Shown piece by piece: positions 4,409-50,725 of a stretch of 64,000 nt of DNA (within the stretch, counting starts at the first letter, position 1; each line of letters starts with the position of its first letter). Below the pieces are notes generated by a model. It was not told where the DNA came from and did no database searches. It saw only the letters and a program-made list of their open reading frames with translations. Position numbers and translations under genes: made by a program. The DNA is from Ruditapes philippinarum (Eukaryota), in NCBI RefSeq assembly GCF_026571515.1, contig NW_026854155.1, forward strand, positions 1 through 64,000, given 5' to 3'.

Positions 4409-7400
4409 ATGAAGACACTATTCCAGAAGTTTGTAATATTTTCTGCATTATCGTTGCTTTTTGAGCCGACCTTTTGTGAAAAGATCAAACGTTTTACATC
4501 TAACGAACGAAATGCTGGAATACTAGAAATACGAAATGTACGGTCGTTGTTGAAATGTTCCATTCACTTTCAACACAATGCGCATTTCAAGTCGTTTAAC
4601 TATCACAAAACTGATCAAATATGCGAACTGAGTAACCTTTATCCGGAAAGCTCAACAACAGAGGAAGGCTGGTCAGTCTACGCATATATCGGTAAGTTTA
4701 ATTTGAAATGTTGACAGTATTATTTTTTTAAGAAATTGTCAGGTATTTTATATGTCTAATCTTTGTCAAGGCGAGCCTTGAAATCACCAAATAGATAGAT
4801 ACGTAATTCGAGGTCATTTATGGAACATTGCGTACTCTTCAAGTATAGTAAATTATGTAATTTGATTATTACAAGACATGATTGTATATCCGTATTGAAT
4901 ACCTTTCATATAAACTGATAGAAATCAATTAGACAACTAACGCACATATTTGCTAGATTTTGTACCATTGTATACGCAAAAAAAATGTAATTTCTGAAAA
5001 AAAAAATTGAAAGATAATCTTAAAATTATTTTGAAGATAACACACAACATCTGTGCAAAATAGTTTGATATATACTTACTATGCATCTTTAGTCAAAATA
5101 ATTGTGTAATAAGTGAAAATCAGGAGGACATACGACAACAACATGGACACATTGATAAAATCTTTAAAATTTTAAATCATTACAGTAACACATTTAATTT
5201 GAATTGAATGATAACTTGTGTAAACACAGTGTGCATTTAATGAAAATTGCCTTGATGTTTTACTCTATTGCAATATCTTGTCCTGACCTGACTATTTTAT
5301 AAGTTATACACAAAAGGACATTACAAATAACACGATCTTGATAGTTATTGTTGCTAGTTAATCGTATTTGTTGCGGAGGTTTCTTAATTTCAAAGATCAT
5401 GTGTTAATGTGAAAAAAAATTGATTAAGCTGCTGCTGGTTGGGCGTCGGCACTGACTTACAACTTTCTTTTCAATACCGTTCATGAAGGCTTGGTCGTTT
5501 TAAAGCTTTTTTAGATTGTAATTTCTTTTCAATTTGAACATGTAAAACAACTTTTACTGTGGGGGCGATATGAACTGATTACGTTCATACAACATATATT
5601 ATTTTGTTTACTTTCTTGTGTCAACTAAATTTACCGACCATGAAATGTTAATAAACTAAACGTGTTTTGTTCCGGAATAAGGGACTTTAAAATTTTTATC
5701 AGAAATTGAATTATTTAAATAAATGTATCAAACCATAATTCTATTCATTATTTTAGAGACCCCTTAACACCATAAAAGATTTTATGTTCATTTCCCGAAA
5801 GCTTTTTTTGTAATTGATGTCCTGTTACAGTTTCAAAAAAGTGGCTCATTACCATAAGAGCTCAGATATTATTTAATTATGTTGTTTTTCGTGAATTTGT
5901 ACTGTTAAAATAATTATGTATTGTGTGTGGAATTAAAAATACTACTTAGTTTACATTTGTCTCCGTTAGTGACAAATAATTTTAATTTCAGTCCTATTTT
6001 CTCAGGGAATAAGTCTTTAGCATGCTCTTAAACCATGATATAAACATTAAAAAGCTAATTTTTGCCTTTATTATGAAGGACACACTATTTGTTTCAGAGG
6101 CCGATTTATATGTGCCTCTAGATAGTAAAGGACAGTTCCCTTTTTAAGATTTCGGCTTTTCTTTACCTCAAAACCTTAGCATTTTAACGTCCTTTATGAT
6201 GGAATAGCATGATTTTATTAGAAAACGTTTTACATTTATTTTCTTTGAATAAAAAGTCGATGGTTCCTGGGGTAATTGGCTGAACTGGGGCTCGTGTTCC
6301 GTTACATGTGGGGATGGAACAATGTCAAGGTCAAGGATTTGCAACAACCCGACACCTAGCAACGGAGGAGAGCAATGTCAAGGGTCAGATCTCGAAAATC
6401 ATGGTTGCAACGCTGGAGCATGCATGGCGTTTGGTACATTCGTTACTATCTTTCATAAAGGGACTCGACTAAGGTTTTTTTGACAATACGAGACTGAAAT
6501 AGTTTGTTTTGATAGAGGTTTTGTTTTCATTACTTGTTTTAATTGAGTACACCAGTTGATCTATGTAGAACGATATTTTCTATGATTCTTGGCTTGTGAA
6601 TTTCATTGGAGTTCCTTAAAATAGATAAACTACAAGAAAAATGGTTTGACTACATAGTTTTTGTCAACAACTCAATGACCTGATTAACAATTATTAGTAT
6701 GTTTTGTCTCTCATTTAGGCTGGACATTTTTCGAGACTTTATTTGAATACGTTTTTCATTTATTTTCTTTGAATAAAAGTCGATGGTTCCTGGGGTAATT
6801 GGCTGAACTGGGGCTCGTGTTCCGTGACATGTGGAGATGGAACAATGTCAAGGTCAAGGATTTGCAATAACCCGTCACCTAGCAACGGAGGAGAGCAATG
6901 TCAAGGGTCTGATCTCGAAAATCATGGTTGTAACGGTGGAGAATGCATGGCGTTTGGTACATTTGTTACTATCTTACTTAAAGGGACTCCACTTAGGTTT
7001 TTTGACAATATGGGACTGAAAATAGTTTGTTTTGTTAGATATGTTGTTTTCATTTGTCTTGACTTGATCTTGTATGCAAAATTTCAGCTCATCTGCCTGC
7101 TCTATTTTTTGTGAGTATCATATCATAATTATGAAAATTCACCACAAATCACCAAAACATCCGGGTAAGCAAAGAAAAAAGAATGTCGATGTATTTCTGA
7201 TTATTTGCTTTAATTTAGTACACCAGATCTAGATGAACTATGTTAGAAACTATTTTCTATGAGTCTTGGCTTGTGAATCTCTTTGAGGTTGCTTAAATAG
7301 ATAAACTACAAGAAAAAAACCGAGCCTGCAACATTTTCTATTTTGTTGTGTTTGACTTTCTTTAGGGATTCTGTCATTCTCTATTCGTCAACAACTCAAT

Positions 7401-10400
7401 TACCTGATTAACAATTACTAGTATGTTTCTCATTTAGGCTGGACACATTAAGGAATGCGAAAAAATAAAGAAACCATGTATTTATCATTTCTTGCATATT
7501 GATCGTTTTTAACCTTTATTGCAGTCAATGGCTATCACTTGAGTACAGTGTCCGCCAATTGGAACACTGCAAAGGTTAGAACTGGTTTAAATTTGTTTTT
7601 TATATATAGGCACATTATCTTTCAGAGATCCATGTTCATCTCTTTTTTTTTGAAAGTCAAACAGAAGTTAAATGAAATTTTATTTATGGATTCAGAACAT
7701 GTTTGATGTGTTGATTGTTAAGAAGAATTGAAGCATAAAGGAAGCACTTTGTAAAGACTTTCGTACAATGCTTATCAATTTGTATATGAGTTTGGTATTA
7801 CGGCAGAGGAATAAATTTCGTCAGATTCATTTTTTTAAATTTCTAAATGGCGGGAAAACGTGTTACATGATTCAAAATTGTCGATAAGTGCCAACTTTTA
7901 TTTGAGTTATTTTTTTGTAGGATTTTGTATCAATTTTAATGATATTATCACTGGAACCATGTTTTCTGAATATGACCATTGTCTGTAAAGGTTTCTTTAG
8001 AAAGGGCAATTAAGTGCTTTTAGCGTGGTCAGTTTGTTTTTTCTAATATATTCTTCATATAAAATGTCGGCTTTTAAGTATATATATATCACACGTGTAG
8101 AATCATATTTTTTTCAGGCAATCTGTGAAGGTGCATCTGCAAGATTGGTGATAATTGATAGTCAAGTAAAAATGGACAATTTGCTAGCACTATACAATAA
8201 TCAAGGTGAAAATCATAAAAATAGACGATATGAAAATGATCCTATCACTATCACTTGAAAACAATAATTTGAATGTTCCACTACTTCAAAACGTGAATTT
8301 ATAAAAGAATTGATATAAAGGATGTAAAGAAACTGTCGCAGTATGGCATGAACATATTAAGCTTACTTTCTAATTAATAACGATACCTATTTTTATTTAC
8401 CTCATTAAAACATCAATTAAATATGAAAATAAATTTTATTGTACAATTTTATGACAGATATTTACTCTTCAGATGTTTTTTGTTATTAAAATTTCTTCAA
8501 GCATGATTATAGATAGCTCTAAATTGTGGTTTGTTTAATCTAAATTAATCATAAATGTTATTATTTCCCTAGACTTTGATCATTGGATTGGAATGACCTG
8601 TGATTTTGGTACAAATTGCCAATGGATTGATGGCCGAACAGCTGTTTCTGGATTCCAAGTAATATATCAATTAATGTTTTTCATAAGATAGAGTAACCGT
8701 TTGTCGTGTCACATCTTATAATGACGTCCTTAAGACTAGAAAAGCTAGACACATCACGGCATTTTTTTGTGTCGGTTAAAGAGAACTCAATTTCATGGTG
8801 TTGTTAAGCTATAATAAACTAGAATTTTCATGGCGTTACTATGCCTCGATTTACTAGACCTACCATTACATTGTCGTTGTTATGCTTCTGTTAACTAGAA
8901 TTTCCAGTATGTCAGAAAGGTGAAGATTGAACGATTATAAATGAATTTGTTTTTGTGTAGTGCAAGCAATTCTGTTTCCCTGTGTTATAACTGTAGTAAA
9001 TTTGCTATAAGGGTAATTGTAACACTGCTATTCAATTTATTGTCTATTTGGCTTAAACATTTAACAACAAACAATAAAATACAACAACAACATAAGTAGC
9101 CTTAACTTGGATTTGATTCCAAGACCTCTCGCTTCCTAAACGAGCGTGTAACCCTTGGACCACGGTGAAGCTATAAAAATGCCTGAAGCAAACCGCATTA
9201 TTCTAATTACGGTTTGAAATCCTTATTAAATTCGAATTAAATTGAAATCGATCGTCGACTGCCTAAAGTCGTCCCTGTCCTTGATCAATTTCCTTACTTT
9301 ATTTTTTAGAAAGTCTAAATAACAAGCAATTTTCATTGATTAAAATGATATTCATCCGCGTTACAAAATTATTTGAATGCATTACCGGTAATTTGTGTAA
9401 TATTAAAGAATTACACTTTATTAGAAATCTTCAACTATTCTATCTTCCCTGAGAAGGTTTAAAAAATTAATGCCCCTGTCATTTGACAATCTTTATGCAG
9501 TTATCTCCCCTTAATTTGTCGGCGTAGGTATACTTATGAAGGGAAGTAACCGCTTTGAGGATTTCGTGACGAACTACTTGCGGATTTTGCAGATAAGCAT
9601 ATCAGGGTCTGAAATATCGCTTCCATTATTTCTTGGTCTGACGACCCAAACAAATAAAAACGATATTTCACTAGTGTAATAACACTTACACGAGAAGTCA
9701 TTTGCGATATACAAAAAATAGCGCTACTTTTAAGTGCGCTTATGTTAACGTTACGTTATAAGCGCGTCAATTAAAATGACTCTTTTAAACAGTTTACCGT
9801 TCTTATTTTATATGATCAATAATGCATTCATTATATTGAGGGTTAATTCAATACTCAATTTATTACACTCGTTGCATTATGCTCGCCAGAGGCTCACATA
9901 ATATGATTTTATTTTATTTTTGCAATAAATTTATTATTAATTCTTCACTCATTCAATATCTGGTATATACTTTGTACTTCTTTGTTTTTTAATCGTTTAG
10001 ATGTGTTTACGTTTTTATCATTTCCTTAGTATTTTGTTTTGTCAAAGCATATCTTGTGAAAAAGAACAAACGTTCACTAAACAATGATGTTTCTAAATTG
10101 TAATGGTATCATGTATATCGTCGTTAATCAAATAAGCATGTAAGTATAACGCAAAACTATTGTTTTGCTTAAATGTCAAACACTGTGGTTTAGAAATAAA
10201 GTATAGTGGTTTTATACTATGTATTTTTGACACGTTTGTGTAATTTGTATGTAGCTTCGGAAAAGTGAATAGCTTTAAAGGGTGAAGTAAAACTGTAAAT
10301 TTCTACAGTTTTTCTTATTACTAAAGGGATATTAAGAACAAAATATATTGCTAAAGAAAAATTATTTTGTAACAAAACGTTTCGGTCAGTTTTTAATGAT

Positions 10401-12171
10401 GCTTATACGTTAAAGTGATGTTATGTTAAAGCACATACTAATTTTCAGCGTAATTAAAAAAATAAATCATAAAACAATAAGAAAACATTTTGTCTCACGT
10501 TTGTAATATCATTTAATAGTTTTATTTGGTCAGTATATACTTTAAGAAGTTATTTGTATAGTTAGCAAAGATATTTGTATGGAACTATATTTTTTACAGT
10601 CCTGGGCTCCACGTGAACCAAACAGTGAGAATTATGTATATATGTTTTTTTTAACAACAACTGGGATGATACTTTCTGCAGCGATAACAAATTCTACATT
10701 TGTGAACAAATCTACAAATTATTACTATCAGATCAGAAAGAAAATATGTCCATATTTTTTTTTAATTTAAAACCACCCATATCGAATGGCTGTTATGCTA
10801 ATTACAAAAAAGAAACAAAATAAGACAAAAAACATCACAAAACCAGGTTTCAAATCATCACCTTTGCTTAAATGTATGTTGTAGTTGGAATACAAACACA
10901 AGCAACGTTAACGTACAATTAATGTGCTACGTGCTATGTAAAAAAAATGAAACAAAAGTTATAAGTAAGTTTTTTTAAAATATCATTAGAAGGAAAAATT
11001 AAAATTCTCTTCAAAATTATCCTGGGGGATGGTAATAAAAATATATCATTTCTAAATTTAGTTATTGATCGGAAATCGATTTTCTATTTAGTAACAGTAA
11101 CCAACACCCAAAGGCTATCTTAAGTGTGGTCCTCACATCAGCTTGGTATACAGCAGGTTTCATTAAAACATTTCGTTCCAAACTCTAGTAATTGACTGGA
11201 AATCGATATTATATTTTAGTAATATTACCCATTATCTCGATTCTATGAGACCAAAAAGCAATTCAAAGGAGATTTTCTCATAAGCTTAGTTTACACCAAG
11301 TTTCACTGAACTATCATTTTCCAAACTCAAAATAATTTTCTAATTTAGTAACAGACATGTCAAAAGTAATACACAACACTATTCGGCTTACATATCACCA
11401 CGTTAACTTGAAATGTTTCATTTTCCAAGATCAAGTATTGACCGGAAACTGATTATCTATCTTAAGTAACAGCGACTTTGTCCCTAGGTGACCCAAAAGC
11501 CATTACAAGCGAGGTCTATATACTTTTGTACTTCACAACAGCAGGTGTCAAGTGCCGTGTGGCAGCCGTAAAAAGTTGCCCGTAGTCACTTTATTGTTGT
11601 TATATTTTTCTGGTCCTTCGGGATCATTGATGCCAACACTATAAAGTGCTGCAAATTGAGTACCACTCAAGCCTGTGCTTGGGGGCGTGAGGGATATTGC
11701 ACTTATTCATTATCCCTCATGTACAGATTAAACAAACCGAGTCTGCAATTTTTATGTTATTTTGTTGTGATTAATGCTTCCGAGGGATCACTTTATTTCC
11801 AGAATTTTATAATATCTTAATTTACACCAATTTACATTTCTTAGTCTACTTATTGATTATTAACCGATTTTCAACTTTTAAGTAACAGTGATCTTGACCT
11901 TGAATATTCATGACTCATAAAACATAAAACAATAAGAAAACATTTTGTTTTACGTTTTCTAATATCATTTAATAGCTTTTTTGGTCAGTATATACTTTAA
12001 GAAGTTATTTGTATAGTTAGCAAAGACATTTATATGGAACTATAATTTTTACAGTCCTGGGCTCCGTTTGAACCAAACAGTGAGAATTGTGTATATATGG
12101 GTTATTTCAACAACAACTGGGATGATACCTCCTGCAGCGATAACAAATTCTACATTTGTGAACAAATCTAA
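4409..12171 (+). CDS. Gene A: secreted PAN/apple-like + 2x TSP1 + C-type lectin (EPN) protein, ~325 aa; join(4409..4691,6257..6433,6780..6956,7525..7574,8118..8205,8573..8658,12055..12171)
   Basis: Exon 1 gives a hydrophobic N-terminus (MKTLFQKFVIFSALSLLFEPTFC) and a PAN-like RSLLKC...KSFNY...ICELS...GWSVY, ending G|gtaag. Two 177-nt phase-1/1 exons encode VDGSWGNWLNWGSCSVTCGDGTMSRSRICNNP...C (TSP1). Four exons assemble a CTLD: VNGYHLSTVSANWNTAK/AICEGASARLVIIDS.../DFDHWIGMTCDFGTNCQWIDG.../SWAPFEPNSENCVYMGYFNNNWDDTSCSDNKFYICEQI*. All introns are GT-AG, the 978 nt are in frame, and homologous exon sizes match paralogue D. Confidence 0.85.
10600..10716 (+). pseudogene. Degenerate duplicate of gene A terminal C-type lectin exon
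   Basis: ttacag|TCCTGGGCTCCACGTGAACCAAACAGTGAGAAT... is near-identical to 12055-12171 but has Cys->Tyr (TAT), a -1 frameshift in a T8 run, and a lost stop (TAC). Confidence 0.8.
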
Positions 12172-13414
12172 AAGAAACTATCTACTATCTGGTCAGAAAG
12201 GAAATATATTCTGCAGGTGTTTTTTTTTTATACCTTTAATATATTTTATTTCTTTATTTGTAGCGTGATTTCAAAGTCTTTATAAACATCTTAAAGAATA
12301 TAAGAAGCGAATAAGAACGCTTCGAATGCACCTTTCAAATACTAAAGAGAAACGCTGATAACACCAGTCGTACAAATACACATCTACATAACTTAATTGT
12401 TAGCAGCATTATAACATTTGTCTAAATATTATAATATTATCTAATGAAGCCTGTTCTTGGTTGTTGTCATGGAAAAAACAAAATAAATCGTCTCCAAGTT
12501 TGAAATGCAAATCTGAATTTGTTAGCATTTCAACAGTTTGACGGCTGGCGACAGGTCAAACTATTTGCAGACGGACTTTTTAGAGGTAAAGAGTTCATGT
12601 TTACACAAGATATACTTTAAGATTTATTCAAAAACGTTCTGACAAATATCTACTGATCCGAATGATTTATTAATGTTGTTAATAATTTAGTAAATGATTT
12701 AGAAAAAAAGAAGATTTTAAAGGAAATTAATGCTGAATAGAATAGACATGTCAAGTTGGCATTACATTTTGTTCAGATTACATTAAAAAAGCACCAATGT
12801 ACGAGATCCAAACTAACACTTTTACCAAGAAATACTTAAGTGGGCATTGCATTGTTTCTTAACATCTCAATTTTTAAGTTATAGAAGTTTGGAAAAATAC
12901 GAACATTCTGATAAATTCGGTAAAACACAACTATTCGCTGCAAAGCTGTTCTATTGTTATTTTCATAATAGATTAAATTTGAAAATGATTTATGCTTGTA
13001 TTCTGCTTGTCAACTTGAGTTCTAACTTTTAAATCATTTTTGATACCCAATAATTATTTTTTGTTAACATTTTGAAGATCTATTTAACGCTGGTTGAAAT
13101 AGATAGCATGAGAAATGGATTTTAAACAACAGATAACAGGAGAAGATTTAAACAATCTAAAGAATTATTTAATTGGTTGAGCTGCCGTGTAAGTGATATT
13201 ATTTAAGACAAATAAAGTAGCTTAAGGACTTTCCAAATATACGTTTATCACAAAGATCTATATAATTGTATAGACATGTGATTTAAAGCGCTACTTGCTT
13301 TTGTTTTATAATATCAGGCCTTTTGAACATAAATAAAGGTCTTGCGTTGTAAATGCGTTTTATATTTATATAACGTCAATGCACGTTTTAATTTTTAGAA
13401 TAGATTTGGTAATA

Positions 13415-14190: not shown

Positions 14191-14662
14191 TATATAACAG
14201 TAATCAACATTTTAAATATTTTCTTTAGTAAAGCATTTGTATTGTCTAGCATAAACTGACAGTTATCTACAAATTTGTAGCTTCTATCTTTAAACAAAAT
14301 TCAAATATAATTATGGTAATTCTGCCTAGTTTTTAGAGTATTTGCAACAGCGCAAATCATCTGTATCTAACTTCAACTGGTGATTTAACCGGTATTGCAA
14401 TTTGTTGAAGAAGTTTGTATGTAAGTAAAAAAAATTGTATGCTTTTTATATATTTTAAACCACAAATATCGAATGGCTGTTACGCTAATTACAAAAAAGA
14501 AACAAAATAAGACAAAAAACATCACAAAACCAGGTTTCCAATCATCACTTTGCTTAAATGTATGTTTGAGTTGGAATACGAACACAAGCAACGTTAACGT
14601 ACGATGTATGTGCTACGTGCTATGTAAATCAGACAAAAAATGAAACAAAAGTTATTAGAAAG

Positions 14663-15592
14663 TTTTTAGCTCACCTGACCACGAAGTGGTCAATGTGAGG
14701 TATAGTGGGCGTCCGTCGTCGTGCGTCGTCAACAATTAGGTTGTTAACAGTCTAGCAGTCACAGTTTTATTTGGATCATCATCAAACTTTGTCAGAATGT
14801 TTGTCTCAATAAAATACAGATCGAGTTCGAAGATGGGTTATCTCCGGTCAAAAACTAGGTCACAGGAGCTAAAAAATAGAAAAAGCTTGTTAACACTCTA
14901 GTGGCTGCAGTTTTCATCCAAATATTCTGAAAATTTGTAAAAAAAGGTTGTTTTGATAATATCTAAGTCCAGTTCGAAGATGGGTCATTTCGGGTCTAAA
15001 ACTAGGTCACAGAAAGCTAAAAATATAAAAAGCTTGTTAACACTCTAGTGGTTGCAGTTTTCATACACATATTCTGGAAATTTGTCAGAAATGTTGCTTT
15101 GATGATTTCTATGTCAAGTTCGAAGATTGGTCATCTCAGGTTAAAAACTAGGTCACATGAGATAAATATAGAAAAAGCTTTTTAACACTCAAGTGGCTGC
15201 AGTTTTCATCCAAATATTCTGGAAATTTGTCAAGAAGGTTGTTTTGATAAGATCTAAATCATGTTCGAAGATTTGTCATGTCCGACCAAAAACTAGGTCA
15301 CAGGATCTTAAAATAGAAAAAGCTTGTTAACACTCTAATGGCTGCAGCTTTGAACCAAATATTCTGGAAATTTGTAAGGAAGGTTGTTTTGATGATTTCT
15401 AGGTCAAGTTTGAATATGGGTCGTCTCCGGTCAAAAATTAGGTCACATTGCCCAAATATGGAAATACATTTTTAACACACTAGAGGTCACATGTTTGACT
15501 CAGTTGTCATCTAACTTTACCAGGATCAGACATTGCTTGGATGCGGTTAATGGGTCAGATGAGCGATCCAGGGACATCATGGCCCTCTTGTT
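14663..15592 (+). mobile_element. Pearl/CvA/HINE-like non-autonomous Helitron/Helentron derivative with ~146-bp internal tandem array
   Basis: 5' TTTTTAGCTCACCTGA and 3' TCAGATGAGC subterminal inverted repeat, GTC-microsatellite near the 5' end, 3' hairpin AGGGACATCATGGCCCT. About 5.5 units start at 14741, 14887, 15034, 15179, 15324, 15469. Inserted in a T-run that is empty at ~10970. Confidence 0.85.
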
Positions 15593-24500: not shown

Positions 24501-24728
24501 AATCTACAATTGAATGGAAATTCAGCATTTTTATTTACTTTCCCATGAGTGTTTATTATCAATAACATAATTGTCGGTCAGATTGACAAAATATATTTTT
24601 CCAGGACTGTATTACATAATCTTCTGTTTCAGTGAGAAACTAGTTAAGTATTACTTTTATGTCATATATGTAAGGAGTGGCGATATAACCTGTTTTGTGT
24701 TAAATAATAAATGTGAGATGAGGACAAA

Positions 24729-27077
24729 ATGAAGAAACTATTTCAGAAGTTAGTTGTTCTGTTTGCTTTATCTTTATTCTTTGAGCCTTATTCTTGTGAA
24801 AAGATCCAACGTTTCTCAGCTAACGGAAGAAATGCGGGATTTCTAGAAGTACGAAATGTTCAATTTATTTTCAACACAATGCGCATTTCAAGTCGTTTAA
24901 CTATCATAAAAATGATCAAATATGCGAACTGAGTAGCCTTTATCCGGAAAGCGTAACAGCAGAGGACGGCTGGTCGGTGTACGCATATAGTGGTAAGATT
25001 TATGCTTAAAGACTCTCATCTCAAAGTATACAGGCATATTTGCATCAATAAATTAAACACAATGCTTTATAAACTAATGTATACAAATAAAAAAGAATAA
25101 GAAAGCCGCAAACCAGTATATTTTGAATGAGCACGAATAATTTTATATATTTAAAAAATACTAGTATATTTTGTTGCAATTTTGTTTCGCTGTTATTCAT
25201 GTTATTCAAGAAGTTGGCGCTTGTATGTGAAATGATTTACAATGTCGAACCTTAAAGACCCGCAAAAATGTACTGTAAATGTTCAACTGCATAGCACATC
25301 TTTCGACAATCTACGAAAAATACACTTATATGGTATGTGAACGAAACAATCGTAAAATATGAGAAACGTACACATTTAACATAGAAAACTGACAGACGGA
25401 AGAGTTTTTGAATGCTAGTTGGACATGCGCACATATCGGTTGTTTTCTATCAATATATGCACAAGCAATGTAATTTATCAAACAAAATATAAGTTCAGTG
25501 TCATTATACTACAATTAAGAATCACAGATATCTTTTTTTTGTTTAGTTTAATAACTTAAATGTTATTTTTGTATGCATGTTAATGTGTCATGAAAGAATG
25601 AGGCTAAAAATATTAAAAGAGTATTCGGTTGCCTCTCACTTTGATTTTTGCAAGTTGCAAACACTTTATTTCTTTAAAAAATCAGTGTTTAAAATACTGC
25701 AAGTTTATAATACCAGTTATTTTTTTTTTAAATTGATGACGGTTCCTGGGGAAACTGGTTAAACTGGGTTTCGTGTTCGGTAACTTGCGGTGATGGAACA
25801 ATGTCAAGGTCAAGGCTATGCAACGAAGGCGACCAATGTCAAGGGTCAAATGTCGAGCAACACGCTTGTAATGAAGGGGAATGCACGGCGACTGGTAAAG
25901 ATTTTGTGGTATTAGTTATCCATAAAACAGAGAAAGCAAAATTAGTGGTCAAAAAAGAAGTATCTTTTAAACGATTTTAAGCCATGTTTATTCTAAATAA
26001 ATTGTTTTATTGTGATTTTGGCATTCAAAGTTTTGGTTAAAATTTCGGCTTATAACGAATCAGGTCTTTAGAGGACTGCTATTTTCATATTTTTGTGTTC
26101 ATTCTTATTTATTGCATTAGTCATTTATTCATTTTATGAGAAAAAAAATATGAAATCGGTTAGTTGTTTGATCAACTATATATCTATAAATATCTTGCAA
26201 ACTTATGGTTTAGGAAGATCGATATTTTTCTATAAAAAATGTCAGATAGTTTTGGTAGGAGAAGATTTAATGTGTTCGTGAACTGATAAAAAAATATCAA
26301 TACTAAATAACTGCCCCATTGAAATGCTTCTTGTTATAACATAAACTACATTGTATCTAGTGTCCTGTGGGGACGCCAGTGTAGTTTTGCATAAAGCAAA
26401 CGGGACATTTTACATGGATACAGCTACTGTTACATGTGACGCCTGGTATCAAACCAGGAACAATACAATAACCGGTCAGATATCTGGAGAATGGGAAACA
26501 ACGATATGTGAAGGTATCGGAATTTATGCAGTATTTTCCATCTGTTATGATTTGAAGGTTAAATGTTCTTCTTTTCACATATTAAAAACAAAACAAAAAA
26601 AACCAATAGCTGTTGTAACGCATTCGCTTGTCACATATAAGGATGCTTTTTTGAAAGACGTTTTTTTAAATACATTTTTGTATAGCTTTATATTATTCAT
26701 TTTCATATTTTCATCTAGAGTCCTGAAAATGTTACGTCTTTCAGTTGCGATTCACATCAAATTTGTTTTAATGAGGAAACTGAGTCAATTTTGTTTGAGA
26801 TGTATGAATTTGTGTTGCAGATTGCTACTTGACGACACCATGGGAGTATACTGGGAAACGGAATACAACAGTCACAGGAATGCCGTGTCACCGATGGGAT
26901 TCACCTGAGGCAATGATTCATGGTTATACTGATCTTCAATACTTCCCCGAATCGACATTGTCGGAGGCTGAGAACTTTTGTAGAAACCCAGACAGTTGGG
27001 ATTATGAGCCATGGTGCATCACAACAAATGAAAATGCTCCAAATTATTGGGAATATTGCGATATAAAGAAATGTTAA
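24729..27077 (+). pseudogene. Gene B: PAN/apple-like + TSP1 + sushi/CCP + kringle, disrupted; exons ~24729..24992, 25736..25894, 26361..26513, 26821..27077
   Basis: Exon 1 is homologous to A/C/D but 19 nt shorter (frameshift, stop at 24930-24932). The TSP1 exon has lost its AG acceptor (attg vs atag in C) and 18 nt. The sushi-like exon VSCGDASV...TATVTCDAWY...TITGQISGEWETTICE lacks the third Cys, and its donor is uncertain. The kringle exon DCYLTTPWEYTGKRNTTVTGMPCHRWD...NFCRNPDSWDYEPWC...YWEYCDIKKC* has all 6 Cys. Confidence 0.8.
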
Positions 27078-29024: not shown

Positions 29025-30248
29025 GTAACACAATGGCAGATATTAGGCATTTAATGTTGTTTAGTAACAATAAAGCATATTAATACATATTAAGTTCATT
29101 ATGTCAATAAATGTCAATTTCAAGTGCCATTAAAAATATTTTATGATGCCCTCTTTTAGTAAATACTTATATTTAATAGTTTACACATGATTCATAATTT
29201 TTTTGAGTCACACACTCCTTCCCACCTGACACCAATGAAAGTGCATAAGGTTGACGGGTTTCCTTATTTTCCTCATTTTTTCTCACTAACAGTTTTGGAC
29301 CCCAAAAAAATTATTCTTAATATTATACATTTGTACTTTTAATCATAATATTTTATAAGGCTTGTGTGGACACCGATTTAAATGTCACCTCATAACATAA
29401 TAAAGCCCTTGTCTAGAAAATGTGTTGGACTGCAGGTTTGTAATATATTTTTTCCTTTGTGTAAAAAATGTCATGTTAATTTCTTCCGCTGCTATGTAAA
29501 TGACTTGATGACTTAATCGTTGATTTGCTTAAGTTTCTAACATTCTTTTGATTTTTGTTTACACAGGAAGCGGTGTCGACATAATTAACGTTTATCTTAG
29601 AGATTACAGGACTAAAACAAAGTATATTTTTATAAAAACGAACCTGATTTTTATTTTTAATATTAGCGTATGATACCTTATATTGTTTAAAAAGCATTTG
29701 GTGAGGCTGTGACAAAAATTTTATTTTGTGTCAGGTTGTGTGCATTTCAGCTCAAACATTAACCCGTTTAAAACACATGCATGGCTATCATTTAACCAAC
29801 TCGCTAAACGATCTAGCTAAAGTTATTGATAATAGTTACAATATTTTGTTTAATGTTTTGAAACGTTTATATTACGCGTTCGTTAAAGCGTGCGAATATT
29901 GTTTAGCGTATTTCGTTAAGCTCCTGCATTATTCGTTTGGTAAAGCGCGCGTGTAAAGTTCGTTCGTATAGCGTTTAACGTGCATGCGTTTTTTCCCCAG
30001 AGCGTGTGATTTTAACGGAAACGTTCACCCTACTGTATGCTTACTTTCTTATAACGATAACTGTTTTCTATTTACGTCATTAAAAAGCAATTAAATATGA
30101 AAAATAAAATTTCTGGTACAATATTATAACAGACCTTTGCTCTTCAAATGTTTCTCTTTATTAAAGTTTCTTCGAGCATGATTGTAGAAAACTCTACTTT
30201 GAGGTTTGTTTAATTTAAATTAATTATAAATGCTATTGTCTTCTTAAG

Positions 30249-30334
30249 ACTTTGATCAGTGTATTTGAATTACCTGTGATTTTGGTGGCAAATGTCAATG
30301 GATAATTGACCGAACAGCTGATTCTGGATACCAA
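30249..30334 (+). pseudogene. Orphan degenerate CTLD 'WIG' exon (remnant of a lost lectin-type paralogue)
   Basis: ttaag|ACTTTGATCAGTGTATTTGA(stop)ATTACCTGTGATTTTGGTGGCAAATGTCAATGG...CAA|gt is homologous to 8573-8658. Flanking intron homology runs ~30039-32360. Confidence 0.8.
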
Positions 30335-30639
30335 GTAATATATCAAATGTTTTCATAAGATAAAGTGACACTTACTCTTGACATGTCTTATAATGACGAC
30401 ACAAAAAATAGAAAAAATAGTCACATCATCGCATTAGTTGTGTCAGATAACGAGAACTTTCTATGGCGTTCATAAGCCTCGGTTTATTTACTAGAATGTC
30501 TTGCTAAGCTTCGGTTAACTAGACCATCTATGGCGTTGCTAAGCCTTGGCTGACTTTCTATGGCGTTGCTTAGTCTCTCTAAACTATACCTTCAATGACG
30601 TCGTTTAACGTCAGATCACTTAACGTTTCCAAGGCGTTC

Positions 30640-30845
30640 TTGGTCGTGTGGTTTTTGACTGCATATCATAATTACCTATTACGGTTTCGAACCCGTCATG
30701 GATTTTTGCTCTGACACGTAAAGAAGATAGCTAGCAAGTTAATAGAACATCGGTCGTTCTACTCAGGTATCCCTTTCGTTTAAAAATGGGTACCTGCGTC
30801 TTCTTGAACGGGTAAAGCTGGAAACCAGTCATAATTTGTGACCTT
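30640..30845 (+). mobile_element. Degenerate SINE copy related to 1290-1490
   Basis: GGTTTCGAACCC...CGGTCGTTCTACTCAGGTATCC...GGGTACCTG...AAAGCTGGAAA. Confidence 0.5.
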
Positions 30846-31475
30846 CTTGTGTTTTTTTTTTACCTAAAGTCTTACCCACCTTCGCTCCCTCATTCCAAAG
30901 TAAGCTATTTATGATAATACCGTTAAGCCTCGTTTATTTAGACTTTGCATGACATAATTATGGCTAAACTCTAACGTTGATAAGCTTCTATTAACTAGAC
31001 GTAACATTCATGGCATGAATAAGGACAGTTCTCTACATAACAATAACGAAAAAAAAAGGAATCAGATTGAAATTTTTAATTTACAATAACTTAAAGCGAT
31101 GATTATTTTATTTTTTTCAATGCATATTACTTCTAACACAAAATATTTTATATTCACACAAAGAAAAAAATCTTAGTAGATTGATAATTTATCTTTATCA
31201 CATAAAGCTATTCAATAAAAACGATATAACACGAGGGTAGTAACACTTAGACATGATGTCTTTTGTGCTACACAAACATAGCGTTATTTTTAAGTGCGCC
31301 AAAGTTAGCGTTACGTTATAGACGCTTCAATGAAAATGACTCTGTTTAACTGTTTACCGTTCTAATTTTATATATTTGATAAAAAGATTATCATATGTGA
31401 TAAAATATGATAAATAGAATATAATATATTATATTGAGTGTAGATTCAATACCAGGTTTGTTGAACTCGTTGCAT

Positions 31476-32246
31476 AATTATAAGAGGTTAATACTTGGTT
31501 GCTGCTCGGCATTATGCGATAATGGCCCGAAGATGAGCATAATGGCCTGAGGGCCACATGCCCAAAGGACATTATGGACTCGAGAGCCATTATCGCATAA
31601 TGCCGAGCAGCAACCAAGAATTAACGTCTTTAATACCTATGTCCGAAATAAGGCATAAAGACATCGCCGCTAATCTTGGTTGTCGCCCTTTTTAAGAAAC
31701 GGACAGTTGTCAATGTAAACAAAAATATGTCATTCAGTTTAACCCTCTTATTAATTTGAAAACATGAGAAAACAAAATAAATATGAGACAATGTCGTTTA
31801 ATTGTTGATTATATTTTTATTTTCTTTTGTGCCTCCGAGACTGATTTCTTGCTCCATTTGTCATCGATCCGATCTTATTTCTACAGTCAAACTGAAATCA
31901 TTTTTGGAAAATTCTGAGGGTTATGTTTTGTCTTTGGTAGAGTTATTGTATTCTTTTATTGAGTTTATAAATCTTCAATGTTAAGTTTTGTTGATTGAGA
32001 CTGATTACGTAATTTAAACTGAAAGCTTTATGTGCAAGGGACTACAGTTCATTCAACGTCAGCAGCCATCTTGAAAGTCACTGAGAGTTGATTACGTCAT
32101 TTTGCACGTGCGCTCATTCACTCGCCCATTATAGAAAAATAATGCCGAGTAGCGAGGCGGACGAAATTGCATAATGACCTAGATCTTGCCATAATGGCCG
32201 TAAAATACCCTAGATTGTGTTACTATATATAGCAACATAGGTATTT
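31476..32246. mobile_element. Non-autonomous element with 149-bp terminal palindrome (Crypton-like architecture, unconfirmed)
   Basis: Perfect 33-bp arms at 31494-31526 / 31586-31618; inverted repeat AATACCTATGT (31632) / ACATAGGTATT (32235). Absent from homologous sites ~9876 and ~49875. Confidence 0.7.
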
Positions 32247-32367
32247 AAACAGTTTAATGCTAGCCAGAGGCTCGCACAATATGATGTACGTTATTTATCT
32301 CGTTTAATAAATTTATTCAATCAATTTCCTGTATATACTTTGTACTTTATATTTATTTTTTATTTAT

Positions 32368-35828: not shown

Positions 35829-38741
35829 ATGAAGACATTATTTCAGAAGTTAATAATATTGTCTGCATTATCGTTGCTCTTTGAGCCTTTCTTTTGTGAA
35901 AAAATCAAACGTTTCACAACTAACGGAAGAAATGCGGGAATTCTAGAAGTACGAAATGTACGCTCGTTGTTGAAATGTTCAATTTATTTTCAACACAATG
36001 CGCATTTTAAGTCGTTCAACTATCACAAAAATGATCAAATATGCGAACTGAGTAACCTTTATCCGGAAAGCTTAACAGCAGAGGAAGGCTGGTCAGTCTA
36101 CGCATATATTGGTAAGTTTCTAATAAAACAAATTCTTCACAAAGTATACAAACTTTTTTGCATCAATAAGTTAAAGCAAATGCTTTATTAAGTTTCATAA
36201 AAAATAATTATGTATAACAAGAAATATGTATCAGTATATTTTGTATGAGCATGAATGGTTTTATATGATTAAAGAAAAATAGTATGTTTTGTCCAAATTT
36301 TGTAACGTTGGATTTTAAGAAGATGATGAAAGCAAAATCTTCACACTCGTATATAAATAATTTACAATGTCGAACCTTAACATATACCTTTCACGGCGGA
36401 AGAGTGTTAGAATTATGGTTGGATATGTGCACATACCGGTTGTATTCTATCAATGTATGTACAAGAAATGTAATGTATCAAACAAAATTAAGTTCAGTTT
36501 TAAATTTATGTTTTATTATACTACAATTAAAGATCACAAACGCCATTTATTTAATAAATTACTTATTAATAAATGTTATTATTTGTATACATGTTTATGT
36601 GTCAGGAAAGAATGTGGATAAAAAAAAGATTTAAAACATTATTTCGGTTGCCTTTCAGTTTAATTTGTGCAAGTTCCCCAAATATTAATTCTTTTAAAAT
36701 ATCAGTGTTTCAGAAAAACTGCAAGTTTATAATACACGTAATTATTCAATTTAAATATAGTTGACGGTTCCTGGGGAAACTGGTTAAACTGGGGCTCGTG
36801 TTCCGTCACATGCGGAGATGGAACAACACTCTGCCATATTATTCATATTTAAAATGGTTTACTACAATAATATATTAGTTCATCATTTTATCATGGTAAT
36901 TTAAATTTTAATTTCTTTTCCATAAAAAATTTTTTACTTACAGCGTATGAATTTCCCAATTTTTTGATAACAAGGGGCCAAGAAAAAGGGTCATCCTAAG
37001 CACGGGCCCCTTTTTTCAAAAAGGGTTCATCTAAACGCTTTTTTCTTTTCAAAAAATTTGGGGTTTTAAAAAATTGAAGTTTTTTGGGGTTTTTCAAATT
37101 TAAATCGGGCACCCGTTTAAACCTTTTAGAAAATATTTTACTTTTTTGAAATTTGCCCTACATTTGATATATTGAGGTAAAGCATTTCAAATATAATGGA
37201 ATAGGCAGATATGCAAGGCAACTTTTTAGTAAGCCCGCAATTTTCTTTTTACCCCCCACAATAAGATTTTAATGATTTAAAAAAAGAAAAATAAACTTTA
37301 AAAAAAGGCCTTTTTTAAAATTTTTAAAAGGGCCCCCACTTGAATTTTTTTGCCCGTCAATTTCGCTCGTTATGAAAAGAAGTGGTAAATTTATACACCA
37401 TTGAAAATAGTTACTGATGAAATGACACTTATTTTCATAGCAAATTATTAATTGAGCTTAATAGTTAAAAATATAATATGCCAAATATGCCAAAAAATAT
37501 GCCAAAAAAATAGCCGCAATACGATTGCGGTTCCTAACGGCAAGCCTCATCACCACCAAATAGGCGCGTTCCCTCGGTATGGATATTCGTATCCGAACCG
37601 CAACATATAACAGATATAATTATTCATTAAAATATGCATTACATTTCTTATTTTCTAGTTTCACGATGGAAACCTTCCAAAAAGCTTTATACTATTTTTA
37701 TCTTGATCGTTTTGATAAAGATGCATTCCCGTCATAATTTTCTATTTAAAATTTACTATTTTCATTTGACATTCACATAAAATGATCTTAATGACGAAAC
37801 AGAATCAGTCTTGTTTGAGATAATGATTAGTATTAGACGTCGCGTGCAACTTGTAGACATGCGGTCGTCCATTCAGCAATTTGGAAAACTTTAGTCTTGC
37901 TTTTATTTTATTTATTCATTTTTGTTTATTTTTGTTTAAACAAAATGTCACTGTTTTCAGATGCCCTCATAAAATAGCTTTTCTGATGTTCAACATGTCA
38001 CCGAGCTTTAAGGAAAGTAAACGTTCAAGTTTTTTAGTAGTGCCGTGTTTGAATATCATATCTTTCTGGGTTTTTTACCGTTTTTATTTACCTATTAAAT
38101 AAAATGTCAATCAGCCAGTCTATAGTCTAATGTCCGGAACAAAAAATTGACAGGAATCCAGAGGTTAGGGTATAATCCATCGCAATTCCCGTTACTTACC
38201 GTAAGGAATTTTTCTTCTTATATTTACGTTATCGTAGATAGAACATTTGTAATGCACAATAAACACGAATATGTGTAAACTAGCATTTAATAAGTAAAAA
38301 TGGATTGATTTGAAGATTTTAAATTCAGTGTACAAACGTATTTTTTTAGCAAATCTTTCAATCGTTGTCGCAACAGACAAACAATTAAAGACTTCAGACA
38401 TGGCATTACTTTGTAAATTTATGCAATAGGTTTTACTTTTTTTTTGGCGGCGTCATCAGCAATTTTATGTATGAATTTGTGTTGCAGAATGTTACTTGAC
38501 AACACCATCGGAGTATACTGGGAAACAGAATACATCCAACACTGGATTGCCATGTTACCGATGGGATTCACCTGAAGCAATAACTCATGGCCATACTGAC
38601 TTACAATACTTCCCTGAATCAACCTTGTCGGAGGCTGAGAATTTTTGTAGAAACCCAGTGAGTTGGTATTTTGACCCATGGTGCATCACCAAACCAAATA
38701 CTGAAAAATATTGGGAATATTGCGGTATAAAGAAATGTTAA
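35829..38741 (+). CDS. Gene C: signal peptide + PAN/apple-like + kringle (~178 aa if join(35829..36111,38488..38741)); TSP1 exon truncated; may be a pseudogene
   Basis: Intact 283-nt exon 1 with G|gtaag donor. TSP1 exon begins at 36761 (atag|TTGACGGTTCCTGG) but homology stops at ~36826 and a stop follows. No sushi exon is visible. The terminal kringle exon ttgcag|AATGTTAC...NFCRNPVSWYFDPWC...YWEYCGIKKC* is intact and phase-compatible with exon 1. Confidence 0.6.
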
Positions 38742-42869: not shown

Positions 42870-42912
42870 GCCGTCTGTCAACGTGCATCTATGACACCTG
42901 TCATAATGGAAA
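42870..42912 (+). pseudogene. Fragment of CTLD 'AICE...' exon
   Basis: cattttcag|GCCGTCTGTCAACGTGCATCTATGACACCTGTCATAATGGAAA|gtaagt = AVCQRASMTPVIME; lies in the same duplicated block as 33144-33186. Confidence 0.55.
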
Positions 42913-45529: not shown

Positions 45530-48500
45530 ATGAAGACACTATTTCAGACGTTAGTTATATTTGCTGCATTATCGTTGCTCTTTGAGCCGTACTTTTGTGA
45601 AAAGATCAAACGTTTTACATCTAACGGGAGGAATGCTGGAATACTAGAAATACGAAATGTACGGTCGTTGTTGAAATGTTCCATTCAATTTCAACACAAT
45701 GCGCATTTCAAGTCGTTCAACTATCACAAAAATGATCAAATATGCGAACTTAGTAACCTTTATCCGGAAAGTTCAATAGCAGACGACGGCTGGTCAGTCT
45801 ACGCATATATTGGTAAGTTTCTTTTGATATGAGGACTGTATGTTTTTAAGAAATTTTCAGGTCTTTTATATGTCTAATCTATGTCAAAGCGAGCGTTGAA
45901 ATCCCTAAATAGCTGGATACTTAATTCGAAGTCATTTATGAAACAATGCGTACTCTTCCAGTATAATAAATTACGTAATTTGATAATTACAAGACATGAT
46001 TGGATAACTGTATTGAATAACTTTCATATAAACTGACAGAAATCAATTATACAACTAACGCACATAATTGCTAGTTTTTGTACCAGTGTATGTATACGGA
46101 AAAAAATAATTTCTGAAGAAAAAAAAAGAAAGAGAATTTTAAATTTATTTTGAAGATAACTGACAACATCAGTGAAAAATAGTTTGATAAATACTAACTA
46201 TGCATCTTTAGTCAAAACAATTGTGTAGTAAGTGTAAAACAGGAGGACACGACGACAACATGGAAACAGTTATAAAACCTTGTGCCCTGTCCTGTGTTTG
46301 TATGGGCTCCACCTGGGCTCCTTGCCACTGGTTCTTGTTGCTGGTCCTGTGGGTGTTGTTGCGTTTATTGAACGCTGCCTTTCCTTGTGGATCTTGTTTA
46401 TCATGTTTTAAAAATCTAAATCATTACAGTGTTTGTCCGGACTAAGGAACTTTCAAGTTTTATCAGAAATGGATTATAAAGTAAATGTATCAAACAATAT
46501 CATTATTTTAGAGACCCCTTAAGACCTAAAAAGCTTTTATTTTCATTTCCCAAAAGCTTTTTTGTACTTGATGTTCTGTAACCATTTCAATAAAATGGCT
46601 CATTACCTAAAAATCTCAATTATTATTTATTGTTGTTTTCCGTTAATAGGTATTGTTAATCTGATTATGTATTGTGTGTGGAAGTCAAAATACTGCCTCG
46701 TGTTCATTTTACTCCGTTAGTGACGAATAATTTTTATTCAGTGCTATTTTCTCAGGGTAATTAGTCTTTAACATGCTCTTAAAATATGATATAAACATTT
46801 AAAGTTATTTTTTGCCTTTATAATGAAGGGCAAAATATTTGTTTCAGAATCCTAATTAAATGTCCCTTAAAATAGATAAGGACAATTCCCTTTTTTTAAA
46901 AGTTTTCTGCTTTTCTTTTCCGCAAAACCTTAGCATTGTTAACGTCTATCATGACGGAATTGCATGACTTTATTAAAAAACGTTTTTCATTCATTTTATA
47001 TTGAATAAAAAGTTGATGGGTCCTGGGGTAATTGGCTGAACTGGGGCTCGTGTTCCGTGACATGTGAAGATGGAACAATGTCAAGGTCAAGGATTTGCAA
47101 CAACCCGTCACCTAGCAACGGAGGAGAGCAATGTCAAGGGTCAGATCTCGAAAATCATGGTTGCAACGCTGGAGCATGCATGGCGTTTGGTACATTACTA
47201 TCTTACTTAAAAGGACTCGACTAAGGTTTTTTGACAATACGGGACTGAAAATAGTTTGTTTTGTTAGATATTTTGTTTTCATTTGTCTTGACTTGAACTT
47301 GTGTGCAAAATTTCAGCTCATTTGCCTGCTCTATTTTTTCGAGTATCATATCATAATTATGAAAATTCACCACAAATCACCAAAACATCCGGCTAAGCAA
47401 AGCAAAAAGAATGTCGATGTATTTCTGATTATTTGCTTTAATTGAGTAGTACACCAGATGAATTTTGTAAGAAACTATTTTCTATGAGTCTTGGTTTGTG
47501 AATCTCTTTAGAGTTGCTTAAATAGATAAACTCCAAGAAAAAACGAGCCTGCAACATTTTCAATTTTGTTGTGTTGGACTTTTTTTAGGGATTCTGATAT
47601 TCTCTATTCTATTTGATAACATAGTTTTTGTCTACAACTCAATTACATGATTAACAATTACAAGTATGTCTTGTCTCTTATTTAGGCTGGACACTTTAAG
47701 GAATGCGATAAGATAAAGGAACCATCTATATATCACATCTTGCATATTGATCGGTTTTTTTACCTTTATTCCAGTCAATGGCTATCACTTGAGTACAGTG
47801 TCCGCCGATTGGAACACGGCAAAGGTTAGAACTGGTTTTGCTGTTTAATATATAGGCACATTATCTTTCAGTCAAACATATGTTAAATAATTGTCTTCTT
47901 TATCGATTTAGAGCGTGCTTGATGCACTGAATATTAAGAATTGAAGCGTAAAGGTAGCACATTGTGAAGACGTTCGTACAATGCTTATTAATTTATATAA
48001 GATTTTGGTATTACGGCAGATGTTAGAATTTTGTCAGATTCATTTATATAAATTCCTAAATGGCAGATAAATGTGTCACATGATTTAAACTTGTCGATAA
48101 GTGCCAACTTTTATAAGAGTTATTTTTTAGTATGATTTTTTTATCAATTTTAATGATATTATCACTGGAACCATGTTTTCTGAATATGATCCTTGTCTGT
48201 AAAGATTTCTTTTAAAAAAGCAACTAAGTGCTTTTACATGAGCGTGGTCAGTTTTTTTTATAATTAAGGCCTATTCTTCATATAAAATGTTGGTTTAAGT
48301 ATATATATCACACGTGTAGAAACATATTTTTCAGGCAATCTGTGAAGATGCATCTGCAAGATTGGTGATAATTGATAGTCAATTAGAAATGGACACTTTG
48401 ATTTCACTATACAATAATCAAGGTGAAAAGCATAAGAATAAACGATATGAAAATGATCCTAACACTATCACTCGAATAAATATTTTGAATGTTCCACACA

Positions 48501-50725
48501 ACTTTAAAACCTAGAATTTATAAAAGAATCGATACAAAAGATGTAAAGAAGCCGTCTTAGTATGCCATAAACACATTAAGCTTACTTTCTAATTAATAAC
48601 GATAACTTTTGTTCTATTTACTTCATTAAAACAGCAATTTAATATGAAAAATACATTTTATGGTACAATATTATGACCGAGATTTGCTCTTCAGATGTTT
48701 TTTGTTATTAAAGTTTCTTCCAGCACAGCATGATTATAGAAATCTCTAAATTGTGATTTGTTTAATCTTAATTAATCATAAATGATATTTTGTCTCTAGA
48801 CTTAGATCATTGGATTGGAATGACCTGTACTTTTGGTACAAATTGCCAATGGATTGATGGCCGAACAGCTGATTCTGGATTCCAAGTAATGTATTAAATT
48901 TTTTCATTAGATATAGAAACCGTTTGTCGTGTCACGTCTTATAATGACGCCATTAAGACTAGAAAAGCTAGAAAAATGACGGTTGTTTTGTGTCGGTTAA
49001 AGAGAACTTTCAATTTCTGTGGAGTTGTTAAGCCATAATAAATAGAATTTTTCATAGCGTTACTATGCCTCGATTAACTAGACCTTCCATGACATTGCTA
49101 AGCCTCGGCTAACTAGATCTTTTACCGCGTTGCTAAACCTCGATTGATTAGAACTTCCATGGCTAAGGCTCGACTAATGATGAAAACTTCCATGGCGTTG
49201 CTAAGCCTCGATTAACTTGACTTTTCATAGCATTGCTAAGACTCGGTTAACTAGAATTCCCTTACTTTATTTTTCAGAAAGTCTAAATAACAAAATTAAT
49301 GTTCATTTAGGCGATCAGAATAATTCGAAGCTTTTCGGAAAAGGCCGAGCAATTTTCATTGATTAAAATGATATTCATCCGCGTAACAAAATTATTTGAA
49401 TGTATTACCAGTAATTTGTGTAATATTAAAGAATTACAATATATTAGAAATATTCGACCAATCAGGAACTATTCTATCTTCCCTGAGAAGTTTTTAAAAA
49501 TCAAAGCGCCTGTCGTTTGAAAATCTTTATGCAGTAATCTAACCTTAATTTGTCGGCGTGAGTATACTAATAAAGGAAAGTAATGGCTTTTAGGAGTTTG
49601 TGATGGATGGACTACTTGCAGATTTTGCAAATAAGCATATCAGGGTCTGAAATTTCGCTACCTTATTTCTTGGTCTGACGACCCAAAGAAATAAAAACGA
49701 TATTTCACTAGTGCAATAACACTTTGACGTGAAGTCATTTGCGATATACAAATGATAGCGTTATTTTAAAGTGCGCTTATGTTTACGTTACGTTATAGGA
49801 GCGTCAATAAAAATGACTCTTTTAAACACTTTAACGTTCTTATATTGAGTGTTGATTTATTAAACTCGTTGCATAAAACAATATGATGCTCGCCAGAGGC
49901 TCGCATAATATGATTTTCTTCAACCTGTTCAATAAATTTATTATTAATTCTTCACTCATTCAATATCTTGTATAAACTTTGTACTTCTTTGTTTATTAAT
50001 CGTTTAGATGTATTTACTTCTTATTATTTACTTAGTTTGTTTTTGTTTTGTCAAAACATATCTTGTGAGAAAGAACAAAAGTTCACTAAACAATGTTTCT
50101 AAATTGTAATGGTATCATGTATAAAGTTGTTAATCAAATGTAAGCATGTAAGCATAAGACAAAACTATTTTTTTGATTAACTGTCAAAACATGCGGTTAA
50201 GAAATAAATATAGGGGTTATATACTATGTATTTTCATTTTTTTTTGACACGTTTGTGTTATTCGTATGTAGCATCGGAACAATGTACAACTTTAAAGGGT
50301 GAAGTAAAACTGTAAATTTCTACGTTTTTTTTCTTATTACCAAAGGGATACAAAGAACAAAGTATATAGCTAAAGAACAAATATTTTGTAACGAAATGTT
50401 TCGGTCAGTTTTTAGAGATGCTTATAACATACTAGATTTTAACGTTATTAAATTTTACAAATATTTTCATAACAATAAGAAAACATTTTGTTTTACGTTT
50501 GTAATATCAACTAACTTTGTTCTGGTTATTGCATACTTTAAGAAGTTGTTTGCATAGTTAGTCAATACATTTAATTTTAACTTTATTTTTGATATTTGAT
50601 ATTCACAGTCCTGGGCTCCATTTGAACCACTTGGTGCATATTGTGTATATATGGGTTATTGGAACAACAACTGGGATGATACTTCCTGCGGCCATAACAA
50701 ACTCTTCATTTGTGAACAAATATAA
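45530..50725 (+). CDS. Gene D: secreted PAN/apple-like + TSP1 + C-type lectin (EPL variant), ~266 aa; join(45530..45812,47013..47189,47775..47824,48335..48422,48800..48885,50609..50725)
   Basis: Exon sizes (283,177,50,88,86,117) and GT-AG boundaries match gene A; the frame is open throughout. Last exon SWAPFEPLGAYCVYMGYWNNNWDDTSCGHNKLFICEQI*. Confidence 0.87.
49010..49260 (+). repeat. ~35-bp minisatellite (TAACTAGAACTTCCATGGCGTTGCTAAGCCTCGAT-like) in the last CTLD intron
   Basis: About 7 degenerate units here; homologous arrays at ~8790-8910 and ~30450-30640. Confidence 0.7.

Follow-up and report, generated by a model that had tools for sequence, protein, structure and literature searches.

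A tandem cluster of PAN-TSP1-lectin genes in the clam Ruditapes philippinarum, with a probable local replacement of the lectin end by a kringle exon

When neighbouring paralogous genes share one front part and end in different binding modules, the question arises of whether those ends are interchangeable heads of a working protein family or the traces of a single, local event. Such a locus is found in the clam Ruditapes philippinarum, at bases 1-64000 of contig NW_026854155.1 (here C2642; RefSeq assembly GCF_026571515.1, 1.41 Gb in 15,874 contigs). This stretch of 64,000 nucleotides, hereafter the window, consists of AT-rich animal DNA (GC about 30%) whose genes seem to be unannotated, and carries four paralogous copies, A to D, in which a signal peptide, a PAN-like N-terminal domain (N-domain) and TSP1 exons precede exons for a C-type lectin domain (CTLD) or a kringle; a fifth copy, E, lies 16 kb past the window end. 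An original prediction, made from the letters alone, described a lineage-specific family with a constant N-terminal scaffold and swappable C-terminal heads; in our hands its observations were partly confirmed and its interpretation was partly supported. The explanation that we favour, and consider probable, is that these copies belong to a PAN-TSP1-CTLD family of venerid clams, in which a young sub-lineage confined to this cluster bears a kringle instead, with B dead, C damaged and E intact.

The paralogous exons were located within the window by tBLASTn, gene models A to E were built from genomic letters alone, and domain exons were scanned singly against Pfam. The predicted set of four same-strand paralogues was recovered, with exon-1 matches (n = 4), all on the + strand, at 4409, 24729, 35829 and 45530. 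TSP1 exons were found at 6257, 6780, 25736 and 47013, with a partial one at 36761; the last CTLD exon was seen at 10600, 12055 and 50609, kringle exons at 26821 and 38488, and a single sushi exon at 26361; all the exons described below are likewise on the + strand.

A and D end, as predicted, in a four-exon CTLD, and both yielded clean models with GT-AG splice sites throughout and an open frame. D has six exons and encodes 266 amino acids in the order signal peptide/PAN-TSP1-CTLD: exon 1 (45530-45812), a TSP1 exon in phase 1 at both ends (47013-47189), CTLD exons a (47775-47824), b (48335-48422) and c (48800-48885), and a last CTLD exon with EPL instead of EPN and the stop codon (50609-50725). 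A has seven exons and encodes 325 amino acids. Its exon 1 (4409-4691), which holds the signal peptide and PAN/apple domain and ends in phase 1, was identified by tBLASTn, gene model and fold; two TSP1 exons follow, both phase 1 to phase 1, namely exon a (6257-6433; tBLASTn and gene model) and exon b (6780-6956), which are an internal tandem duplication with 92% nucleotide identity. CTLD exons a (7525-7574), b (8118-8205) and c (8573-8658, with a WIGM motif) lead to a last CTLD exon that is itself duplicated: the proximal copy (10600-10730) is degenerate, with a frameshift in a T run, a Cys to Tyr change and the stop codon gone, and the distal copy (12055-12171) is intact, with EPN and WDD motifs and a stop codon. 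A and D are duplicates of one whole gene, with an identity of 83-86% when introns are included, and their exon-1 proteins, together with that of C, are 88% identical. In both genes, the introns that interrupt the CTLD have phases 0, 1 and 0; at every inter-domain junction of the cluster (exon 1|TSP1, TSP1|CTLD, TSP1|sushi and sushi|kringle) the phase is 1, as had been claimed. An array of 35-bp repeats (49063-49260) lies within the long CTLD intron of D.

The identities of most modules were clear from Pfam. TSP1 (PF00090; cut-off 21.6 bits) was matched by D, B and E with 49.3, 43 and 40.7 bits, and the TSP1 translations of A and D display WxxW motifs, a CSVTCG-type motif and six cysteines. Full-length paralogue proteins scored 62 and 55.9 bits against the CTLD model (PF00059; cut-off 22.6), against 21.1 bits for the last CTLD exon of D scanned alone, and the domain carries the WIGM motif and six cysteines in both A and D. 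The kringle exons of B, C and E, with six cysteines each, scored 62.6, 58.5 and 60.9 bits (PF00051; cut-off 34.3). The sushi exon of B reached 16.9 bits against a cut-off of 20.7 (PF00084) and has three cysteines.

The N-domain required structural evidence. By sequence it falls below the Pfam PAN cut-off (PF00024; 14.1-16.2 bits versus 21.4), and the 25 family members compared share only three conserved cysteines, against the usual four to six, both of which speak against a PAN assignment. An AlphaFold (AF2) model built on the 25 family sequences (predicted local distance difference test score, pLDDT, 90) superposed on the PAN domain of plasminogen (Z 11.2), apple domain 5 of Toxoplasma MIC4 (TgMIC4; 10.1), the Sarcocystis lectin SML-2 (10.0), the HGF N domain (9.8) and the apple domains of factor XI and prekallikrein (9.0-9.3), with root mean square deviations of 1.9-2.2 Å over 67-70 residues. 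The top 20 or so structural matches are all of the PAN/apple type, Foldseek concurs, and phmmer searches with the N-domain reach true PAN repeat proteins (E 5e-6 to 1e-3). On account of the superposition and the phmmer matches, and despite the sub-threshold Pfam scores, the modelled domain is best described as a divergent PAN/apple domain, so the PAN-like label of the original prediction holds at the level of fold though not of the Pfam threshold. The proteins, small, modular and cysteine-rich, would be secreted, as suggested by some 20 hydrophobic residues at the N-terminus, which the model renders as a lower-confidence helix, with no such stretch later in the exon translations.

Both lectin-type products may act as soluble glycan- or pattern-recognition proteins. 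When compared with the calcium-site-2 ligands expected of a mannose-type lectin (EPN, a following Glu, and WND), A shows EPN, then Glu, then WDD, and D shows EPL without the following Glu and keeps WDD; A thus appears to retain the EPN mannose-type calcium site that D appears to have lost. Ratios of non-synonymous to synonymous substitution rates (dN/dS; Nei-Gojobori estimates) range from 0.15 to 0.3 when A, C, D and E are compared over exon 1 and TSP1. Between A and D the ratio is 0.42 overall, 0.39 in the last exon and 1.44 in CTLD exons a-c, the last value deriving from 11 non-synonymous and 2 synonymous changes. Positive selection was considered for the CTLD and set aside, as so few changes amount to a trend only. 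The front of the protein is constrained and the CTLD changes faster, including the EPN to EPL replacement and the lost Glu in D.

How general the lectin end is can be judged from the rest of the genome. Exon 1 has at least 33 matches, a lower bound, on many contigs, several of them with stop codons. Flanks were read at 31 other loci, downstream sequence being covered for all but the eight exon-1 copies that are most distant, and the order was almost always N-domain, TSP1 and four CTLD exons; the variants lack TSP1, have two TSP1 exons or contain in-frame stops. Kringle heads are present in 3 of the at least 33 copies, all in the C2642 cluster. By comparison, the kringle exon as such has at least 150 matches genome-wide, on many contigs and often in tandem, and kringle-bearing genes look strongly expanded in R. 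philippinarum; only four of these exons are close to that of B, among them those of C, of E (C2642:82413-82664) and of a gene on contig C4619 described below. Elsewhere, a 24-kb contig (C209) holds two family copies, the first with an exon 1 that is 90% identical to that of A and no detectable TSP1 exon, the second interrupted by stops both in exon 1 and in its last CTLD exon; C209 may represent either a mini-cluster of paralogues or a haplotig that has diverged.

Protein databases gave a concordant picture. When 1.84 billion representative proteins were searched in full with HMMER, only 19 matched, the named ones from R. philippinarum and Mercenaria mercenaria and the remainder short, unnamed environmental-assembly fragments and weak generic PAN proteins. 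The architectures represented are N-TSP1-CTLD, N-CTLD and, in one Mercenaria protein, the N-domain together with a chitin-binding CBM14 domain and a linker rich in Ser, Gly and Thr. Three R. philippinarum RefSeq proteins (XP_060580108.1, XP_060601408.1 and XP_060595617.1) and an ADAMTS1-like model match other loci of the assembly, exon by exon, at 100% identity. PAN-TSP1-CTLD proteins of this species and of Mercenaria are already in RefSeq under misleading automatic names: XP_060601408.1, XP_053387603.1 and others have the N-domain, TSP1 and CTLD as in A and D, share 35-55% exon-1 identity with them as paralogues or orthologues, and are called adhesion GPCR B3-like, collectin-12-like, thrombospondin-1-like or ADAMTS1-like, names unfit for secreted proteins of 200-270 amino acids; none has a kringle. 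We found no description of a PAN-TSP1-CTLD or PAN-TSP1-kringle family in the bivalve literature, and the original remark that these architectures were not recognised as a named family stands in so far as papers are concerned, although RefSeq already models the first of them. Taken together, these data support a family restricted, among the relatives found, to venerid clams, evolving by birth and death (as originally proposed) on phase-1 symmetric exons with a constant signal/PAN/TSP1 front. The predicted variability of the head is borne out by the CBM14 and N-CTLD relatives, but nearly all copies examined carry a CTLD.

B and C, a second pair of paralogues with 75-86% identity, are the copies of the window with a different end, and both are defective. 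In B, exon 1 (24729-24992) lacks 19 bp at 24852|24853, a gap that is flanked by two short direct repeats and looks like a slippage deletion, and the resulting frameshift leads to a stop after 67 codons. The TSP1 exon of B (25736-25894) has an intact donor, and its acceptor reads TG instead of the AG present in A, C, D and E. Immediately upstream is an in-frame TAA, which leaves no nearby acceptor able to rescue splicing. The next exon (26361-26513), phase 1 to phase 1, has 63% amino-acid identity with the second sushi of the gene on C4619, and its third cysteine is missing; it is a decayed sushi, since it has three cysteines and a sub-threshold Pfam score while its C4619 homologue passes with 31.7 bits and four cysteines. 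The kringle exon (26821-27077) retains six cysteines and a stop codon. B, with its PAN-TSP1-sushi-kringle order, is a pseudogene.

C retains an intact exon 1 (35829-36111) and an intact kringle exon with a stop codon (38488-38741). In its TSP1 exon, the acceptor is intact and homology ends after 66 nucleotides, the first 22 residues (36761-36826), a deletion of about 450 bp relative to E having removed the rest of the exon and its donor; when this stump is read through, a stop follows after 124 codons. Joining exon 1 to the kringle exon, phase 1 to phase 1, gives an in-frame PAN-kringle product of 178 amino acids, so C is damaged and at best yields this single open product by skipping the stump. 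A precedent for such a skip is XP_060580108.1 (hepatic lectin-like; contig C1945), in which PAN is joined straight to the CTLD over a frameshifted TSP1 exon (L036 9302-9471). The TSP1 exon described as common to all copies is present as two exons in A, without an acceptor in B and as a stump in C, and the kringle end claimed for C is real on a copy that has lost most of its TSP1 exon.

The intact member of this type is E (C2642:79763-82667), a PAN-TSP1-kringle gene. Its three exons (exon 1, TSP1 and a stop-bearing kringle) are fully open, with good splice sites and phase-1 joins and without a sushi exon. In B, C and E alike the kringle exon ends in a stop codon, with no protease domain after it. 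A 117-amino-acid fragment from an environmental assembly (P0001) is a near-identical allele or orthologue of E exon 1. Since both alternative heads of the window sit on defective copies and the intact kringle copy lies outside it, the claim of swappable heads was overstated for this window.

These lesions bear on an opposite view, in which all four genes of the window work and exchange heads freely, the defects of B being assembly or haplotype artefacts and C producing a PAN-kringle protein. We think this improbable. It could draw on the last three exons of B, which are open in the domain frame for 188 codons to the terminal stop, on the dN/dS of 0.36 overall between B and E, on the in-frame join of C and on the RefSeq model that skips a damaged TSP1 exon; however, B has three independent defects of different kinds, which is atypical of sequencing errors, the dN/dS of the C and E kringles is 0.71, and kringle heads are limited to the three copies of one cluster. 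Nor do we give much credence to the converse, that the kringle and sushi exons are debris or parts of other transcripts and that PAN-TSP1-kringle was never a working architecture. The scattering of at least 150 kringle exons over the genome, damage in two of the three kringle-type copies and the want of any database protein with this architecture would agree with it, but exon order and phase-1 compatibility are alike in three paralogues, a stop codon closes each kringle exon, E is fully open with good splice sites, and collinearity between B and E extends over the entire unit, with the dN/dS of 0.36 given above.

We therefore return to the probable explanation of a kringle sub-lineage within a lectin family, and to the source of its cassette. 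A gene on contig C4619 encodes a signal peptide, a PAN-like domain, two Pfam-passing sushi domains and a kringle, with exons at about 4398-4730, 5790-5990, 6450-6620 and 7013-7264 of G000:C4619:96001-105000 (L032). The sushi and kringle exons of B, with their flanks, share 83% nucleotide identity with its last two exons, and on this similarity the C4619 gene is likely to be of the donor type of the sushi-kringle end. Some 3 kb downstream of the B kringle exon there is a decayed 3' part of a CTLD-type gene (30036-32362), collinear with A 8358-9991 (exon c and the next intron), whose exon-c relic (30248-30334) has an in-frame stop. In the exon-1 tree, B and E are sisters (support 97/98) within an unresolved group that also includes A, C, D and the CTLD-type copy of C209, and all outgroups are CTLD-type. 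From the C4619 homology, the CTLD relic, the tree and the CTLD in nearly all copies, we infer that the CTLD is the ancestral head and that the kringle head is a local, recent replacement by a stop-bearing cassette. An origin of C by recombination, with an A/D-like 5' part and an E-like 3' part, was also considered and was not retained: its exon 1 stands at the same distance from either group (89-90%), and alignment of the upstream regions is poor.

Under this explanation, venerid clams would possess a family of small secreted proteins in which a signal peptide and a PAN/apple domain are followed by one or two TSP1 modules and a short-form CTLD; this family would have grown by tandem duplication and decayed by pseudogenisation. 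In one young sub-lineage, seen only in the C2642 cluster, the CTLD end would have been replaced: a kringle exon with its own stop, preceded in B by a sushi exon, would have been placed behind the phase-1 TSP1 exon, and the cassette would have captured the 3' end of the gene, leaving the old CTLD exons to decay. PAN and TSP1 may serve as a constant adhesive stalk and the CTLD as a glycan binder, with binding calcium-dependent and of mannose type in A and non-canonical in D. Several PAN domains are lectins themselves, and the N-domain need not be a passive scaffold.

Several observations weigh against parts of this account. The CTLD relic may derive from another, truncated duplicate and not from the ancestor of B, and exon 1 of C does not group clearly with B and E. 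The kringle ratio of 0.71 suggests that the kringle may be under weak constraint. The models of A to E derive from genomic sequence; a profile search restricted to proteins of 142-453 amino acids gave no counterpart of A, C, D or E and no kringle-bearing protein, so the presumed expression of these copies may be low or absent. Finally, the case for a role in immune recognition is one of analogy.

Such a role we judge to be about evenly balanced. A less likely, although possible, alternative leaves the genes as described and assigns them to shell matrix, mucus or adhesion. CTLD proteins such as perlucin act in biomineralisation, the Mercenaria relative bears a chitin-binding domain, and work on Mercenaria holds that C-type lectins may serve both immunity and biomineralisation (PMC9781830), all of which would suit it; against this, the lost calcium and sugar ligands of D and the rapid turnover of copies fit recognition families as well. 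A bolder idea, by analogy, is that the cluster is a recognition system still evolving, in which paralogues swap whole heads (CTLD, kringle, sushi-kringle, CBM14) by recombination within phase-1 introns, and that kringle-type proteins physically partner CTLD-type ones of the same cluster. The vertebrate tetranectin CTLD binds plasminogen kringle 4, which offers a model for this partnering. We hold the idea to be very unlikely; if true, the locus would encode both halves of a self-assembling lectin complex.

Comparison with known systems helps to place the family. The PAN fold of the N-domain is shared with plasminogen and HGF (Z 9.7-11.2), and E and C put a kringle after it, reminiscent of the HGF NK1 fragment; unlike members of that family, the clam genes have one kringle and no serine-protease-like domain, in E a TSP1 repeat separates the PAN domain from the kringle, and the kringle itself would be a recent local acquisition. 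In apicomplexan micronemal adhesins (MIC4, SML-2, TSP1-family), too, PAN/apple domains occur together with TSP1 as adhesive modules; the PAN domains of these proteins bind galactose, and the adhesins rank with the top matches by structure. These organisms are unrelated to clams, identity is 16-22% at most, and the likeness is one of modules only. Among molluscs, the snail VIgL proteins (FREP, CREP and GREP of Biomphalaria) are a multigene family with a constant N-terminal scaffold and alternative lectin heads, although there the scaffold is of the immunoglobulin superfamily, not PAN-TSP1, and the heads are fibrinogen, CTLD or galectin; the comparison implies no somatic diversification in the clam family. 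Also comparable are the expanded bivalve C-type lectin domain proteins (CTLDcps) described by Saco et al. 2023 (PMC10140915), which are likewise secreted, single-CTLD proteins with large, lineage-specific tandem repertoires and unusual added domains. The clam family differs from them in its PAN/apple and TSP1 front and in an N-domain subfamily found only in venerid clams, and neither that survey nor a 2025 review (PMC12842671) mentions TSP, PAN or kringle partners of bivalve C-type lectins.

Other features of the window lie outside the genes. Intergenic tandem repeats occur at 14824-15447 (period 145 bp, 4.3 copies) and 51459-51766 (period 149 bp, 2 copies). Inside a GC-richer block at 54-56 kb, a 122-amino-acid open frame on the - strand (54694-55059) has weak HTH_32/HTH_29 matches (E 0.0014) and is probably a transposase remnant. 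The stretch 56000-58200 has a GC fraction of 0.17 and AAT/ATT/TAT microsatellites, and adjoins masked runs of N, which lie at 57-63 kb.

The cluster is a clear but fairly ordinary instance of exon shuffling. Its stages stand side by side: a donor-like gene, an intact recipient (E) and a dead one (B), a copy with its middle exon lost (C), exons remaining from the old head, and TSP1 and terminal exons present in duplicate. With no new mechanism indicated, it may serve as a teaching and test case of how phase-1 symmetric exons permit modules to be gained, lost and replaced. The family itself is real, lineage-restricted and undescribed: a venerid-specific PAN-TSP1-CTLD family of at least 30 loci, mislabelled as GPCR-, ADAMTS- or collectin-like, whose corrected labels would aid readers of immune or biomineralisation transcriptomes from farmed clams.

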